A stretch of DNA of 64,000 bases from Schizochytrium sp. TIO01 (taxonomy: Eukaryota; Protista; Bigyra: Labyrinthulomycetes): positions 1,751,859-1,815,858 of the forward strand of contig SMSO01000006.1 of assembly GCA_004764695.1 (NCBI GenBank). The letters run 5' to 3'. The position numbers and the translations under genes were made by a program. Below, piece after piece: positions 41,596 through 46,534 of this stretch. Each line of letters starts with the position of its first letter. Position 1 is the stretch's first letter. The notes under the pieces are model-generated. The model did no database searches. It saw only the letters and a list, made by a program, of their open reading frames with translations, and was not told the DNA's origin.

Positions 41596-44500
41596 ATGTC
41601 AGACCACCCACGTGTTGTCGCTGCTCTTGAACAGCTTCAGAATGGCGCTACAACACTGAAGTAAGTTAAGACGCTCGCTCGCTCGCTCGCTTGCTTGCTT
41701 GCTTGCTTGCTTGCTTGCTTGCTTGCTTGCTTGCTTGCTTGCTTGCTTGCTTGCTTGCTTGCTTGCTTGCTTGCTTGCTTGCTTGCTTGCTTGCTTGCTT
41801 GCTTGCTTGCTTGCTTGCTTGCTTGCTTGGTTGATTTATTGAGTATGCATCAATCGAAGAAACATCAAAATGAGAGCACAACAAAGGTGAAATCCTGAAA
41901 GCCAACCTAGATCACTCACGTCCATGCATTCATGCATCTAATGTAATGTGTAATATGTTGTTTGCCATCATTGCATCAAATCGACAGTCTATATAGGAAC
42001 AAAATCGGCTCAGAGGGCGCCAAGGCAGTGGCTGCGGCGCTGAAAGAGAACCGGTCGCTGACATCACTCAAGTAAGTTGTCTACGCAACACCGCAGCTCG
42101 TGGACTTGTTTGTACATGATGCTTGGTTTGTTGTTTGGTGGGTGGGTCGATGTTGTTTTGCAAGTTTATGCAATCTCTTGTTTGTTTGATGGATGGATGA
42201 GTTGTCTGTTTGAGTGAGTATACATCCATCGAACAAAGAGCAAAATGACAACACAACAAAGATAAATGCTGAAAGCCAACCTAGATCACTCACGTCCATG
42301 CATGCATGCGTGCATCTATTGTAATATGTAACGTGTAATGTGTTGCTTGCCACCATTCAATCAAATCGACAGTCTTGACGGCAACTATATCGGCTCAGAG
42401 GGCGCCAAGGCAGTGGCTGCGGCGCTGAAAGAGAACCGGTCGCTGACATCACTATCGTAAGTTGTCTACGCAACACCGCAGCTCGTGGACTTGTTTGTAC
42501 ATGATGGTTGGTTTGTTGTTTGGTGGGTGGGTCGGTGTTGTTTTGCAAGTTTATGCAATCGCTTGTTTGTTTAATGGATGGATGCGTTGTCTGTTTGAGT
42601 GAGTATACATCCATCGAACAAAGAGCAAAATGACAACACAACAAAGATAAATGCTGAAAGCCAACCTAGATCACTCACGTCCATGCATGCATGCGTGCAT
42701 CTATTGTAATATGTAACGTGTAATGTATTCCTTGCCATCATTCAATCAAATCGACAGTTTTAAGTGGAACGAAATCGGCTCAGAGGGCGCCAAGGCAGTG
42801 GCTGCGGCGCTGAAAGAGAACCGGTCGCTGACATCACTATAGTAAGTTGTCTACGCAACACCGCAGCTCGTGGACTTGTTTGTACATGATGCTTGGTTTG
42901 TTGTTTGGTGGGTGGGTCGGTGTTGTTTTGCAAGTTTATGCAATCTCTTGTTTGTTTGATGGATGGATGAGTTGTCTGTTTGAGTGAGTATACATCCATC
43001 GAACAAAGAGCAAAATGACAACACAACAAAGATGAAATCCTGAAAGCCAACCTAGATCACTCACGTCCATGCATGTATCCAATGTAATGCATTTCAATGT
43101 AATGTATTCCTTGCCATCATTGAATTATATCAACAGTCTTAGTCTCAACAATATCGGCTCAGAGGGCGCCAAGGCAGTGGCTGCGGCGCTGAAGAAGAAC
43201 CGGTCGCTGACATCACTCAAGTAAGTTGTCTACGCAACACCGCAGCTCGTGGACTTGTTTGTACATGATGCTTGGTTTGTTGTTTGGTGGGTGGGTCGGT
43301 GTTGTTTTGCAAGTTTATGCAATCGCTTGTTCGTTTGATGGATGGATGGGTTGTCTGTTTGAGTGAGTATACATCCATCGAACAAAGAGCAAAATGACAA
43401 CACAACAAAGATAAATGCTGAAAGCCAACCTAGATCACTCACGTCCATGCATGCATGCGTGCATCTATTGTAATATGTAACGTGTAATGTATTGCTTGCC
43501 ATCATTCAATCAAATCGACAGTCTTAGAAGCAACGAGATCGGCTCAGAGGGCGCCAAGGCAGTGGGTGCGGCGCTGAAAGAGAACCGGTCGCTGACATCA
43601 CTCGAGTAAGTTGTCTACGCAACAGCGCAGCTCGTGGACTTGTTTGTACATGATGGTTGGTTTGTTGTTTGGTGGGTGGGTCGGTGTTGTTTTGCAAGTT
43701 TATGCAATCGCTTGTTTGTTTGATGGATGGATGGGTTGTCTGTTTGAGTGAGTATACATCCATCGAACAAAGAGCAAAATGACAACACAACAAAGATGAA
43801 ATCCTGAAAGCCAACCTAGATCACTCACGTCCATGCATGTATCCAATGTAATGCATTTCAATGTAATGTATTCCTTGCCATCATTGAATTATATCAACAG
43901 TCTTAGTCTCAACAATATCGGCTCAGAGGGCGCCAAGGCAGTGGCTGCGGCGCTGAAGAAGAACCGGTCGCTGACATCACTCAAGTAAGTTGTCTACGCA
44001 ACACCGCAGCTCGTGGACTTGTTTGTACATGATGCTTGGTTTGTTGTTTGGTGGGTGGGTCGGTGTTGTTTTGCAAGTTTATGCAATCGCTTGTTTGTTT
44101 GATAGATGGATGGGTTGTCTGTTTGAGTGAGTATACATCCATCGAACAAAGAGCAAAATGACAACACAACAAAGATAAATGCTGAAAGCCAACCTAGATC
44201 ACTCACGTCCATGCATGCATGGGTGCATCTATTGTAATATGTAACGTGTAATGTATTAATTGCCATCATTCAATCAAATCGACAGTCTCTGTGGCAACAA
44301 AATCCGCTCAGAGGGCGCCAAGGCAGTGGGTGCGGCGCTGAAAGAGAACCGGTCGCTGACATCACTATCGTAAGTTGTCTACGCAACACCGCAGCTCGTG
44401 GATTTGTTTGTACATGATGCTTGGTTTGTTGTTTGGTGGGTGAGTCGGTGTTGTTTTGCAAGTTTATGCAATCGCTTGTTTGTTTGATGGATGGATGAGT

Positions 44501-46534
44501 TGTCTGTTTGAGTGAGTATACATCCATCGAACAAAGAGCAAAATGACAACACAACAAAGATAAATGCTGAAAGCCAACCTAGATCACTCACGTCCATGCA
44601 TGCATGCGTGCATCTATTGTAATATGTAACGTGTAATGTATTGGTTGCCATCATTCAATCAAATTGACAGTCTTAGAAGCAACTTTATCTACTCAGACGG
44701 CGCCAAGGCAGTGGCTGCGGCGCTGAAACAGAACCGATCGATGACATCACTCAAGTAAGTTGTCTACGCAACAGCACAGCTCGTGGACTTGTTTGTACAT
44801 GATGCTTGGTTTGTTATTTGGTGGGTGGGTCGGTGTTGTTATGCAAGTTTATGCAATCGCTTGTTTGTTTGATGGATGGATGGGTCGTCTGTTTGAGTGA
44901 GTATACATCCACCGAACAAAGAGCAAAATGACAACACAACAAAGATAAATGCTGAAAGCCAACCTAGATCACTCACGTCCATGCATGCATGCGTGCATCT
45001 ATTGTAATATGTAACGTGTAATGTAATATATTGCCTGCCTTCATTCAATCAAATCGACAGTCTTGAAAGCAACTGTATCGGCTCAGAGGGCGCCAAGGCA
45101 GTGGGTGCGGCGCTGAAAGAGAACCGGTCGCTGACATCACTATAGTAAGTTGTCTACGCAACACCGCAGCTCGTGGACTTGTTTGTACATGATGCTTGGT
45201 TTGTTGTTTGGTGGGTGAGTCGGTGTTGTTTTGCAAGTTTATGCAATCGCTTGTTTGTTTGATGGATGGATGAGTTGTCTGTTTGAGTGAGTATACATCC
45301 ATCGAACAAAGAGCAAAATGACAACACAACAAAGATAAATGCTGAAAGCCAACCTAGATCACTCACGTCCATGCATGCATGCGTGCATTTATTGTAATAT
45401 GTAACGTGTAATGTATTGCTTGCCATCATTCCATCAAATCGACAGTCTTCAACACAACCAGATCGACGACGAGGGCGCCAAGGCAGTGGCTGCGGCGCTG
45501 AAAGAGAACCGGTCGCTGACATCACTATCGTAAGTTGTCTACGCAACACCGCAGCTCGTGGACTTGTTTGTACATGATGCTTGGTTTGTTATTTGGTGGG
45601 TGGGTCGGTGTTTTTTTGCAAGTTTATGCAATCGCTTGCTTGTTTGTTTGGTTTGTTTGATGGATGGATGGATGGATGGATGGGTTGTCTGTTTGAGTGA
45701 GTATACATGCATCGAACAAAGAGCAAAATGACAACACAACAAAGATAATAGCTGACAGCCAACCTAGATCACTCACGTCCATGCATGCATGTATCTAATG
45801 TAATGCATTGCAATGTAATGTATTGCTTGCCATCATTGAATTATATCAACAGTCTTCGTGCGAACAATATCGGCGACGAGGGCGGCAAGGCAGTGGGTGC
45901 GGCGCTGAAAGAGAACCGGTCGCTGACATCACTCGAGTAAGTTGTCTACGCAGCTCAAAGACGTTTTTGTACATGATCCTTGCTTTGTTGGTTGGTGGGT
46001 GGGTTGGTGTTTTTTTGTCAAGTTTTGTTTAGCAAGTTTACTCGATTGCTTGTTTGTTTAATTCTGTTTTTGCTTGTTTGGTTGGGGTGGATGCAACAGA
46101 GAGCATGACCACATCAAAGGAGAAATGAAATTGTACTATCATTCCTTTGGTACCTTAGATGAGGTTCAATTGTTAACTGACGAACGGAGATGATGCTATT
46201 TGGTCTGCTAATTCTTAGATTAAGATTGAGCTATGAAGGACAGAGGGAGCTGAAATTGAATGAAGAGATTTATTATGCAAAGACAAGAAGGACAAGTCTT
46301 GAGCAGATCTCTCGTGAGCTTGGTTGTATACATGCTGTAAACAATGCACTTTCTATGCCATCTTCAGTGAAACTCAGTCGTTCTGGACAGAGTCTGCTTG
46401 CTAGCAGTAATGGTGAGCAGAGCTCGAAAGAGGAATTTCTTGCTACGCAGAAAGTAGAGCTTGATATATTGGAAGCTTTAATCGTTGCCTTTAGTGAATC
46501 ATTGCGATTGCTGGGCCCTTACATTTTTGAATGA
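41596..46534 (+). CDS. Variable LRR-array protein: 13 exons, 11 single-LRR 84-nt exons, 434 aa
   Basis: Exon 1 41596-41660 (MSDHPRVVAALEQLQNGATTL). LRR exons 41988-42071, 42373-42456, 42758-42841, 43137-43220, 43522-43605, 43901-43984, 44286-44369, 44671-44754, 45061-45144, 45446-45529 and 45853-45936. Last exon 46219-46534. Every donor is GTAAGT; LRR acceptors are ACAG and the last is CTAATTCTTAG; all phase 2. Total 1305 nt = 435 codons, stop only at the end. Consensus LxxNxIGSEGAKAVAAALKENRSLTSLx is an RI/NLR-type 28-aa LRR. Confidence 0.9.
41675..41828. repeat. (GCTC)n/(GCTT)n tetranucleotide microsatellite in intron 1 of the LRR-array gene
   Basis: About 35 GCTT units starting just after the GTAAGT donor at 41661. 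Confidence 0.95.
41870..46010 (+). repeat. Tandem array of ~385-bp units (11 copies), each one intron plus one LRR exon
   Basis: Exon-start spacings are 385, 385, 379, 385, 379, 385, 385, 390, 385 and 407 bp. Intron sequence is near-identical between units. Confidence 0.97.

Follow-up and report, generated by a model that had tools for sequence, protein, structure and literature searches.

A tandem array of 385-bp units between the 5S and 18S ribosomal RNA genes of Schizochytrium sp. TIO01 raises the question of whether repeats at such positions are spacers or genes. The array lies in a stretch of 64,000 nucleotides (contig SMSO01000006.1; C5:1751859-1815858 in an assembly that has 37 contigs and 64.07 Mb), which we refer to as the window. 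Long repeats in this setting were described in Aurantiochytrium limacinum, whose genome of about 62 Mb and 26 chromosomes has subtelomeric ribosomal DNA (rDNA) interspersed with elements named LORE-TEARS (10.1101/2023.06.15.545109, a preprint published, according to reference lists, as Collier et al., Curr Biol 2023). These elements had no similarity to GenBank sequences and were treated as spacers, with a possible role in the maintenance of chromosome ends (10.1101/2023.06.15.545109). In their Group 0, a unit of about 385 bp is repeated about 9 times in the interval from the 5S to the 18S gene, and their Group 1 has a unit of about 406 bp (10.1101/2023.06.15.545109). Our analysis indicates that the array of the window is very probably the exon–intron body of a spliced gene, in which each unit contributes one leucine-rich repeat (LRR) of the ribonuclease inhibitor (RI) type.

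Exon–intron structure of the array

Tandem Repeats Finder describes the array as 10.9 copies of a 385-bp unit with 90% matches. A regular-expression scan of the + strand found exactly 11 segments in which ACAG, 84 nt, and GTAAGT follow each other, and all of them are open in one phase. The minus strand of the window has a single match to the pattern, which is part of a neighbouring gene. Each 84-nt segment encodes a 27-codon peptide of the type L-x-x-N-x-I-G-S-E-G-A-K-A-V-A-A-A-L-K-E-N-R-S-L-T-S-L and one codon split by the intron. A preliminary description of this DNA, made from the letters alone, had placed these 11 exons between a 65-nt exon with an ATG and a 316-nt terminal exon, giving a stop-free product of 434 amino acids. 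Both the scan and the frame bear this out: 65 + 11 × 84 (924) + 316 nt make 1305 nt, i.e., 434 codons and a stop, and the split codons are stop-free as well. An in-frame TAG lies 21 nt upstream of the ATG at 41596, which is the first ATG after it. The terminal exon is directly preceded by AG and ends with TGA. The same description held that the list of open reading frames (ORFs) misses the gene; this needs correcting for the terminal exon, which is listed as ORF 46190-46534.

The introns also contain minus-strand ORFs of 91-96 amino acids. We rejected them as coding because the unit lengths differ by non-multiples of three and the length of the open stretch varies between units. The + strand of the introns is rich in T and G (58% A+C on the opposite strand), a bias that may also contribute to the minus-strand open stretches. 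Elsewhere in the 64-kb window no second LRR array was found, only the 5S gene recurring (at 60039), and no LRR exons were found downstream of the 28S gene.

Exon integrity and the pattern of variation

Homologous arrays elsewhere in the genome allow exons to be compared with their own introns. Using a profile of the window units, we placed 238 units in 23 arrays (35 loci and the window); the genome-wide analysis rests on 42 shorter loci rather than on whole large arrays. The exon is fully spanned in 231 units, and the 7 that deviate in exon length are hits cut at the edge of an array or locus. These 231 exons correspond to 206 distinct sequences and 191 distinct peptides, from at least 23 arrays. 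Every one of them is exactly 84 nt long and in phase 2-2, and the first exon base is T in 230. The acceptor ACAG is present in 230 of the 238 units and the donor GTAAGT in 228. The introns of these units have accumulated 1339 deleted and 442 inserted nt, the exons no indels. Stops in the coding phase are absent from all 231 exons, but 134 and 230 of these exons contain them when read in the two remaining phases, a pattern far beyond chance. The preliminary description had set as a test of its reading whether homologous 84-nt segments collect stops and frameshifts at the neutral rate; the 231 exons hold none of either.

Nucleotide diversity is distributed very unevenly within a unit. It is 0.056-0.064 in the introns, whose copies are about 94% alike whether they come from one chromosome end or from different ends, and 0.034, 0.046, and 0.073 at positions 1, 2, and 3 of the scaffold codons. 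In five codons per repeat, those of residues 1 (the junction codon), 3, 4, 6, and 9, it rises to 0.46-0.73, while the Leu, Asn, and Ile codons between them have a second-position diversity of 0.000. The number of different amino acids is 19 at residue 3, 15 at residue 4, and 13 at residue 6. The base frequencies at each position predict about 37 stops at these three residues, and there are 0. The ratio of nonsynonymous to synonymous divergence (dN/dS) of the scaffold codons is 0.47, with a dS of 0.086 that is close to the intron diversity; the dS of the hypervariable codons is 0.80. In the canonical L-x-x-L-x-L-x-x-N-x-L frame the variable residues occupy positions 5, 7, 8, and 10, with one more in the following loop. 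In LRR proteins, these positions of the frame face the solvent on the concave beta-sheet.

These patterns bear on two other explanations. The first regards the exons as what is left of a captured gene, and the spliced RNAs as by-products of spacer transcription without protein function, the DNA itself having a role at chromosome ends. A role in chromosome maintenance was indeed proposed for LORE-TEARS, and G-quadruplexes were noted in some of them (10.1101/2023.06.15.545109). The strong homogenisation of the introns (diversity 0.06) also fits, as does a dN/dS near 1 of the tail in some comparisons, and the fixed position relative to the 5S and 18S genes at many ends could reflect a role in cis. 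However, relics would gather stops and frameshifts, and here there are none of either in 231 exons that stand beside indel-rich introns. The variation is 10 times the intron level, limited to five codons, and stop-free, and the splice sites (in about 96% of the units), start exon, and tail exon are conserved. We find it very improbable that the exons are relics. Structural and coding roles are not mutually exclusive.

The second explanation accepts a real gene family and attributes its hypervariability to targeted mutation or gene conversion, or to old alleles, and not to selection for ligand diversity; the proteins might then share a single housekeeping role, e.g., a nucleolar or axonemal one like that of LRRC34. 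The contrast in dS between hypervariable and other codons fits old multi-nucleotide differences in a homogenised background, and LRRC34 is the best match among solved structures for P0002, a transcript-derived relative described below. Yet the variable positions are the ones expected to be exposed to solvent, interleaved with invariant Leu, Asn, and Ile codons, and a pure hotspot would neither spare all structural codons nor avoid all stops. The likeness to LRRC34 is generic to RI-type repeats. We regard this second explanation as unlikely, and selection on the exposed residues of a coding array as the better account of the pattern.

Transcription and splicing

The gene is expressed and spliced. 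Contigs from sequencing runs were aligned to 45560-47600, a region that avoids the long internal repeat and extends from a single unit through the last intron and the tail exon into the downstream spacer. Three of the runs (X1, X4, and X8) come from three studies with three organism labels, and their label, 'RNA?', is a guess; a fourth, X17, is a DNA-type run and the sole DNA control for splice joints. In X4 the depth is 0 in the intron bins at 45560-45835 and in the bins beyond 46595, with exon 12 and the tail exon covered and coverage ceasing past about 46561. In X1 and X8 the depth of the exon bins exceeds that of the intron bins 10-30 times. The coverage of X17 extends evenly over introns and flanks and includes the exons. 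A contig of X4 joins 45936 to 46219 ('skips 282, GT..AG'), which is the predicted last intron.

Many contigs of X1, X4, and X8 have the end of an LRR exon joined directly to the variable start of another LRR exon. These exon–exon joints appear as 'goes back 71/72' with 11-19 intervening letters, in more than 50 different junction sequences, and the RNA contigs hold many exon variants. In one X8 contig with a loose end at 45859, a paralogous exon 1 is joined to an LRR exon. X17 has no such joints, apart from one 'goes back 57' contig. The preliminary description had named a spliced alignment to the 12 predicted junctions among its checks; the aligned region covers the last of them, which is recovered at the locus itself, and the other exon–exon joins come mostly from paralogues. 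Relatives of the gene are also present among the transcript ORFs of the MMETSP collection (P0001, P0002, and P0004). In P0004, 12 intron-derived residues are followed by one LRR exon and then directly by a tail of group B; its LRR and tail parts are about 250 nt apart in the genome (C36:2325659-2325781 and C36:2326029-2326376). Contigs end about 12-27 nt past the stop codon, and the transcript is probably polyadenylated.

Given where the gene lies, RNA polymerase I might transcribe it along with the spacer or the rDNA, instead of polymerase II starting from a conventional promoter. Polymerase I transcribes the telomeric expression sites of trypanosomes, and the gene lies inside an rDNA unit, in the orientation of the 18S-28S genes and 3.1 kb upstream of them, an arrangement repeated at most of the ends tested. 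Against this, the cis-splicing is of the canonical GT..AG type, the family is present in MMETSP transcriptomes, which are reportedly poly(A)-selected, and the coverage of X4 and X8 halts about 27 nt past the stop codon with no run-on toward the 18S gene. We consider polymerase I very unlikely to be the source of these transcripts.

Start and tail exons across paralogues

The exons at both ends of the gene are maintained as well. Among 15 variants of exon 1 that were compared, 12 have the 65-nt form with ATG and GTAAGT, amino-acid changes included; one of the remaining 3 has lost 9 nt (leaving 56 nt) and stays in frame, and the other two are without the expected donor. Of about 73 loci of the family to which the window gene belongs (family 1), about 71 have an open tail exon, down to 55% amino-acid identity, and 2 have a stop. 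The tail is shared with a second family, at 38-42% identity and with 21 invariant columns common to both, and constraint on it is concentrated in motifs.

In sequence searches the tail domain looks restricted to this lineage. Neither exon 1 nor the tail exon matched a Pfam family significantly; a tail match to PGAP1_2nd (E = 0.11) was disregarded as weak. Compared with 1.84 billion representative proteins, the tail retrieved two related clusters alone, both of MMETSP transcript ORFs. A bacterial repeat protein that matched the tail (P0003) was considered spurious. A search of the protein collection with the tail of P0002 returned P0002 alone; among annotated proteins of 138-437 residues in that collection, none with the tail came up.

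The family at chromosome ends

The gene of the window belongs to a family found genome-wide at dozens of chromosome ends. A DNA query of the length of one unit has 207 matching places on at least 16 contigs of the assembly. Other arrays keep the 385-bp period with 6-20 units, and the frame is intact in each of the complete paralogue models, which have 9, 11, and 17 LRR exons. The telomeres of this genome consist of TTAGG, and contig C3 (2.32 Mb) runs from telomere to telomere, with one array 25 kb from its left end (-) and one 19 kb from its right end (+), both genes being directed at the telomere. In the window, the LRR gene fills the spacer between the 5S and 18S genes, is oriented as the rDNA, and is likewise directed at the telomere (Table 1). 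An LRR tail exon lies 1.6-3.7 kb upstream of 9 of the 12 18S genes scored in a genome search, on the same strand. The preliminary description had proposed, if the array belongs to the published spacer family, a genome-wide repertoire of LRR receptor genes at chromosome ends; the analysis supports its genome-wide extent and its position at the ends.

This arrangement matches that of Group 0 LORE-TEARS, which the preliminary description had named as a spacer family of about 385 bp. The likeness extends to the 385-bp unit, the copy number of about 9-11, the position between 5S and 18S near a telomere, the TTAGG repeats, and a genome of about 62-64 Mb; the assignment rests on these properties of unit, position, and genome and not on a comparison of repeat sequences. 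Group 0 was published as a spacer repeat, whereas the array described here is the exon–intron array of an expressed LRR gene. The text of 10.1101/2023.06.15.545109 does not mention leucine or coding content in LORE-TEARS, and no mention of LRRs or coding content in these repeats was found in the later Aurantiochytrium literature that was searched. The coding reading covers Group 0 alone among the LORE-TEARS groups.

The second LRR family, that of P0002, is also subtelomeric, with at least 18 loci in the genome at 80-91% identity. Its exons are about 93-100 nt long and about 210 nt apart, and its repeats are more diverged. The tail exon of this family lies about 1.6 kb upstream of 18S genes and, on contig C24, between a family-1 gene and the 18S gene.

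Several side observations concern individual copies. At C30:5479479 (+) and C30:5520137 (-), two further copies are 100% identical to the window over a 771-nt query and over the exon 1 region, with 98% identity in the flank on the 5S side; these twins of opposite orientation, about 40 kb apart, reflect either a very recent exchange between chromosome ends or redundancy of the assembly. Contigs C13, C30, and C31, which are very long, have facing pairs of arrays 40-60 kb apart deep inside them (e.g., on C13 at 4.00 Mb (+) and 4.06 Mb (-)), which looks as if chromosome ends had been joined end to end in the assembly or its storage. An array of the LRR exon family in C24:3981338-3985715 (L031) has a period of 406 bp instead of 385 bp. 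Three arrays (C13:4008147-4008408, C35:2643020-2643281, and C32:42057-42318) end in a unit truncated within the exon, with 63 nt aligned.

On the other side of the 5S genes, and head to head with the gene described here, lies an LRR-kinase gene. Its four LRR exons are in weakly repeated units of 81-83% identity, and the ORF downstream of them encodes a protein kinase domain (E = 1.1e-29). Between this gene and the LRR-only gene sit the two 5S genes. A 254-bp tandem duplication at 18740-19237 (2 copies, 90% matches) is unrelated to the array.

Table 1. Coordinates of the LRR gene, its surroundings, and example loci of the second family. Positions are those of the window unless a contig is given.
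Feature	Position	Strand	Remarks
Exon 1	41596-41660	+	ATG + 21 codons + 2 nt; donor GTAAGT
Intron 1	41661-41987	+	Mostly a (GCTT)40 microsatellite (41673-41833)
385-bp tandem array, 10.9 units	41840-46025	+	Unit of one 84-nt exon and about 301 nt of intron
LRR exon 2	41988-42071	+	84 nt, phase 2-2; LRR_6 match, E = 0.0037
LRR exon 3	42373-42456	+	84-nt pattern scan; LRR_6 match, E = 0.03
LRR exon 4	42758-42841	+	84-nt pattern scan
LRR exon 5	43137-43220	+	84-nt pattern scan; LRR_6 match, E = 0.00018
LRR exon 6	43522-43605	+	84-nt pattern scan
LRR exon 7	43901-43984	+	84-nt pattern scan
LRR exon 8	44286-44369	+	84-nt pattern scan
LRR exon 9	44671-44754	+	Most divergent exon; no match in single-exon LRR_6 search
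LRR exon 10	45061-45144	+	84-nt pattern scan
LRR exon 11	45446-45529	+	LRR_6 score 24.3 bits (cut-off 23.4 bits)
LRR exon 12	45853-45936	+	Pattern scan; exon bins of RNA-type runs 10-30 times deeper than intron bins (X4 intron bins empty)
Last intron	45937-46218	+	282 nt, GT..AG; joint 45936->46219 in a contig of run X4
Terminal exon	46219-46534	+	316 nt; 104 codons of a putatively lineage-restricted tail + TGA; RNA-type contigs reach about 46561
Two 5S rRNA genes	40852-41131	-	Rfam; divergent from the LRR gene, about 465 nt upstream of its ATG
18S-5.8S-28S rDNA	49610-55125	+	Rfam; same orientation as the LRR gene, starting 3.1 kb past its stop codon
18S rRNA gene	49610-51395		Rfam
5.8S rRNA gene	51483-51633		Rfam
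28S rRNA gene	51779-55125		Rfam
Further 5S rRNA gene	60039		Rfam
LRR-kinase neighbour	34843-39613	-	Head to head; four 84-nt-type LRR exons and a kinase ORF
Neighbour LRR exons	38258-38341, about 38700-38780, about 39075-39155, about 39533-39613	-	Peptides resemble the array repeats
Neighbour kinase ORF	34843-37674		943 residues
Second-family locus L036	C31:5690076-5693414		
Second-family locus L038	C30:13625-16963		
Second-family locus	C5:7433-7774		
Second-family locus	C24:3989662-3990003		

The predicted protein

The repeats fit the RI-like LRR consensus, L..L.L..N.I/L G..G....L...L with 28-29 residues: across the 231 exons there is little or no variation in the columns L2, N5, I7, G8, G11, L19, N22, L25, and L28. 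Of six peptides from single exons, five match positions 10-24 of the LRR_6 profile (PF13516) with E-values of 2.8e-05 to 0.03, one of them above the cut-off. The matches are partial because the exon borders cut the profile.

The nearest view of the fold comes from P0002, a 250-residue transcript ORF of the second family that is likewise built exon by exon, with the shared tail after more diverged LRRs. Its sequence matches LRRC34, ribonuclease inhibitor, NOD2, and the LRR domains of NLRP proteins, the best match among solved structures being LRRC34. An AlphaFold model (predicted local distance difference test [pLDDT] 74.9; predicted template modelling score [pTM] 0.68) consists of five strand–helix repeats, after which come two long helices, at 151-190 and 216-249, with a disordered loop between them. 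With this model Foldseek retrieved the RI-like set of the sequence search again, RI, NOD2, and NLRP1 among it, together with tropomodulin and leiomodin. By extension from this paralogue, the 434-residue product is best described as an LRR-only protein, predicted to form an LRR solenoid with a two-helix tail that possibly oligomerises.

The preliminary description had called the 11 tandem 28-residue repeats RI/NLR-type, NLR standing for nucleotide-binding LRR proteins. The RI part of this name agrees with the columns and the LRR_6 matches, and the NLR part is not supported. No NACHT or NB-ARC domain was found: the first LRR begins after 21 residues, Pfam gave no significant match for either exon 1 or the tail, and the 465 nt upstream of the gene are 5S genes and spacer. 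By eye, exon 1 is unlike a signal peptide or a membrane span, and the product is probably cytosolic or nuclear. The term receptor, for which hypervariability would be the one ground, is unproven, because there is no NACHT or signalling domain and exon 1 is unlike a signal peptide.

Evidence against a coding array

A number of observations weigh against the reading of the array as a protein-coding gene family, or limit how far it reaches. The evidence for the gene is at the level of DNA and RNA, and its translation into protein is predicted. The RNA evidence consists of contigs from runs guessed to be RNA and not of reads, and provides no full-length isoform, end, strand, or level of the transcript. 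The junction of the window itself was seen in one contig of one run, and most exon–exon joins are paralogous and not assignable to a locus. The DNA control X17 has a single contig (depth 46) with an unexplained 'goes back 57' joint in exon 12 (45875-45931), which could be an intronless LRR–LRR junction in DNA or an assembly artefact. Between its two main clades the tail exon has a dN/dS of 0.5-0.98, i.e., weak constraint. The fold evidence comes from P0002 and not from the 434-residue product. The three arrays with truncated ends continue into shared sequence without a recognisable tail exon and may be broken or rearranged copies. Finally, the 231 exons are linked by recent duplication and homogenisation and are not independent, and the conservation of the scaffold could in part reflect concerted evolution. 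Relatedness of the copies cannot, however, produce the contrast between exons and their own introns. On balance, we hold to the reading of the 385-bp array as a spliced LRR gene with considerable confidence.

Comparison with other exon-array and variant gene families

The closest known architecture is that of the LRR genes of Tetrahymena, which consist of tandem arrays of 90-bp exons, one LRR each, with an extreme bias to phase-2 introns (2019, PMC6564038). The youngest of these genes are detected as DNA repeats and are concentrated in subtelomeric and pericentromeric regions, unequal crossing-over was proposed for them, and some are fused to a protein kinase (PMC6564038). Such arrays were stated to be unknown in other organisms (PMC6564038). 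The genes described here share with them exons of one length, phase-2 introns with a linking junction codon, repeat units of exon plus intron, and a subtelomeric location, and the LRR-kinase neighbour has its parallel in the kinase fusions. They differ in exon length (84 vs 90 nt), in host (a stramenopile, not a ciliate), in their location between 5S and 18S rDNA, in their specific conserved tail, and in their number (dozens, not thousands), and no association with retrotransposons was seen here. Because exon length and host lineage differ, the origin may well be independent of that of the ciliate genes.

The RI- and NLR-type LRR proteins share the 28-residue L..L.L..N.IG..G repeat and the LRR_6 matches with the family, as well as the sequence and fold matches of P0002. 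Vertebrate NOD/NLRC genes have one LRR per 84-bp exon, and RI has two per 171-bp exon. The family is nevertheless not an NLR: it has no NACHT, CARD, or PYD, 21 residues before the repeats, a novel two-helix tail (as modelled for P0002), and near-identical tandem introns. With the subtelomeric variant families (Plasmodium var, Trypanosoma VSG/ESAG, Giardia VSP, and the nucleotide-binding LRR clusters of plants, PMC6102362) it shares multiple copies at chromosome ends, local hypervariability, and evidence of exchange between ends. Unlike them, it has an exon 1 that, by eye, does not resemble a signal peptide, belongs to a free-living saprotroph, and lies within rDNA units. The resemblance is therefore one of location and variability only.

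A possible mechanism of diversification

The structure of the genes suggests how such a repertoire might arise. Since every internal exon is symmetric (84 nt, phase 2-2) and introns are about 94% alike, LRR modules could be gained, lost, or exchanged with the frame intact, through unequal crossing-over or gene conversion that involves different units or different chromosome ends. The same exchange would homogenise the introns and the scaffold codons, by the processes that keep subtelomeric rDNA uniform. Selection would in turn diversify the five residues per repeat that are predicted to lie on the outward face of the beta-strand and in the following loop. Such a process would yield a binding-protein repertoire of many different specificities.

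A role of this repertoire in recognition or defence is plausible. A more far-reaching proposal, which we put forward tentatively and think rather doubtful as a whole, is that each rDNA unit at a chromosome end carries a hypervariable LRR member acting in innate recognition or defence, e.g., against persistent mirusviruses or further invaders of the cell interior, with its cassettes shuffled by the recombination that homogenises rDNA between chromosomes. Diversification of the proteins would then be coupled to the maintenance of rDNA and telomeres.

Implications

If the array of the window belongs to Group 0, the most abundant class of "novel spacer repeat" at all Aurantiochytrium chromosome ends would be coding and not spacer. 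The gene described here makes this the second lineage with LRR genes built as arrays of exons of one exact length in phase 2, which suggests a recurrent route to variable binding proteins. It also places spliced protein-coding genes inside telomeric rDNA units, which raises the question of how genes of polymerases I, II, and III would be interleaved within a few kilobases. For annotation, the case is a caution that repeat masking and filters on ORF length conceal genes of this kind. For the biology of the organism, it raises the questions of whether the machinery of rDNA homogenisation may drive the diversification of a protein repertoire, and of what the recognition targets would be of dozens of hypervariable LRR proteins in a marine saprotroph that hosts persistent relatives of giant viruses.

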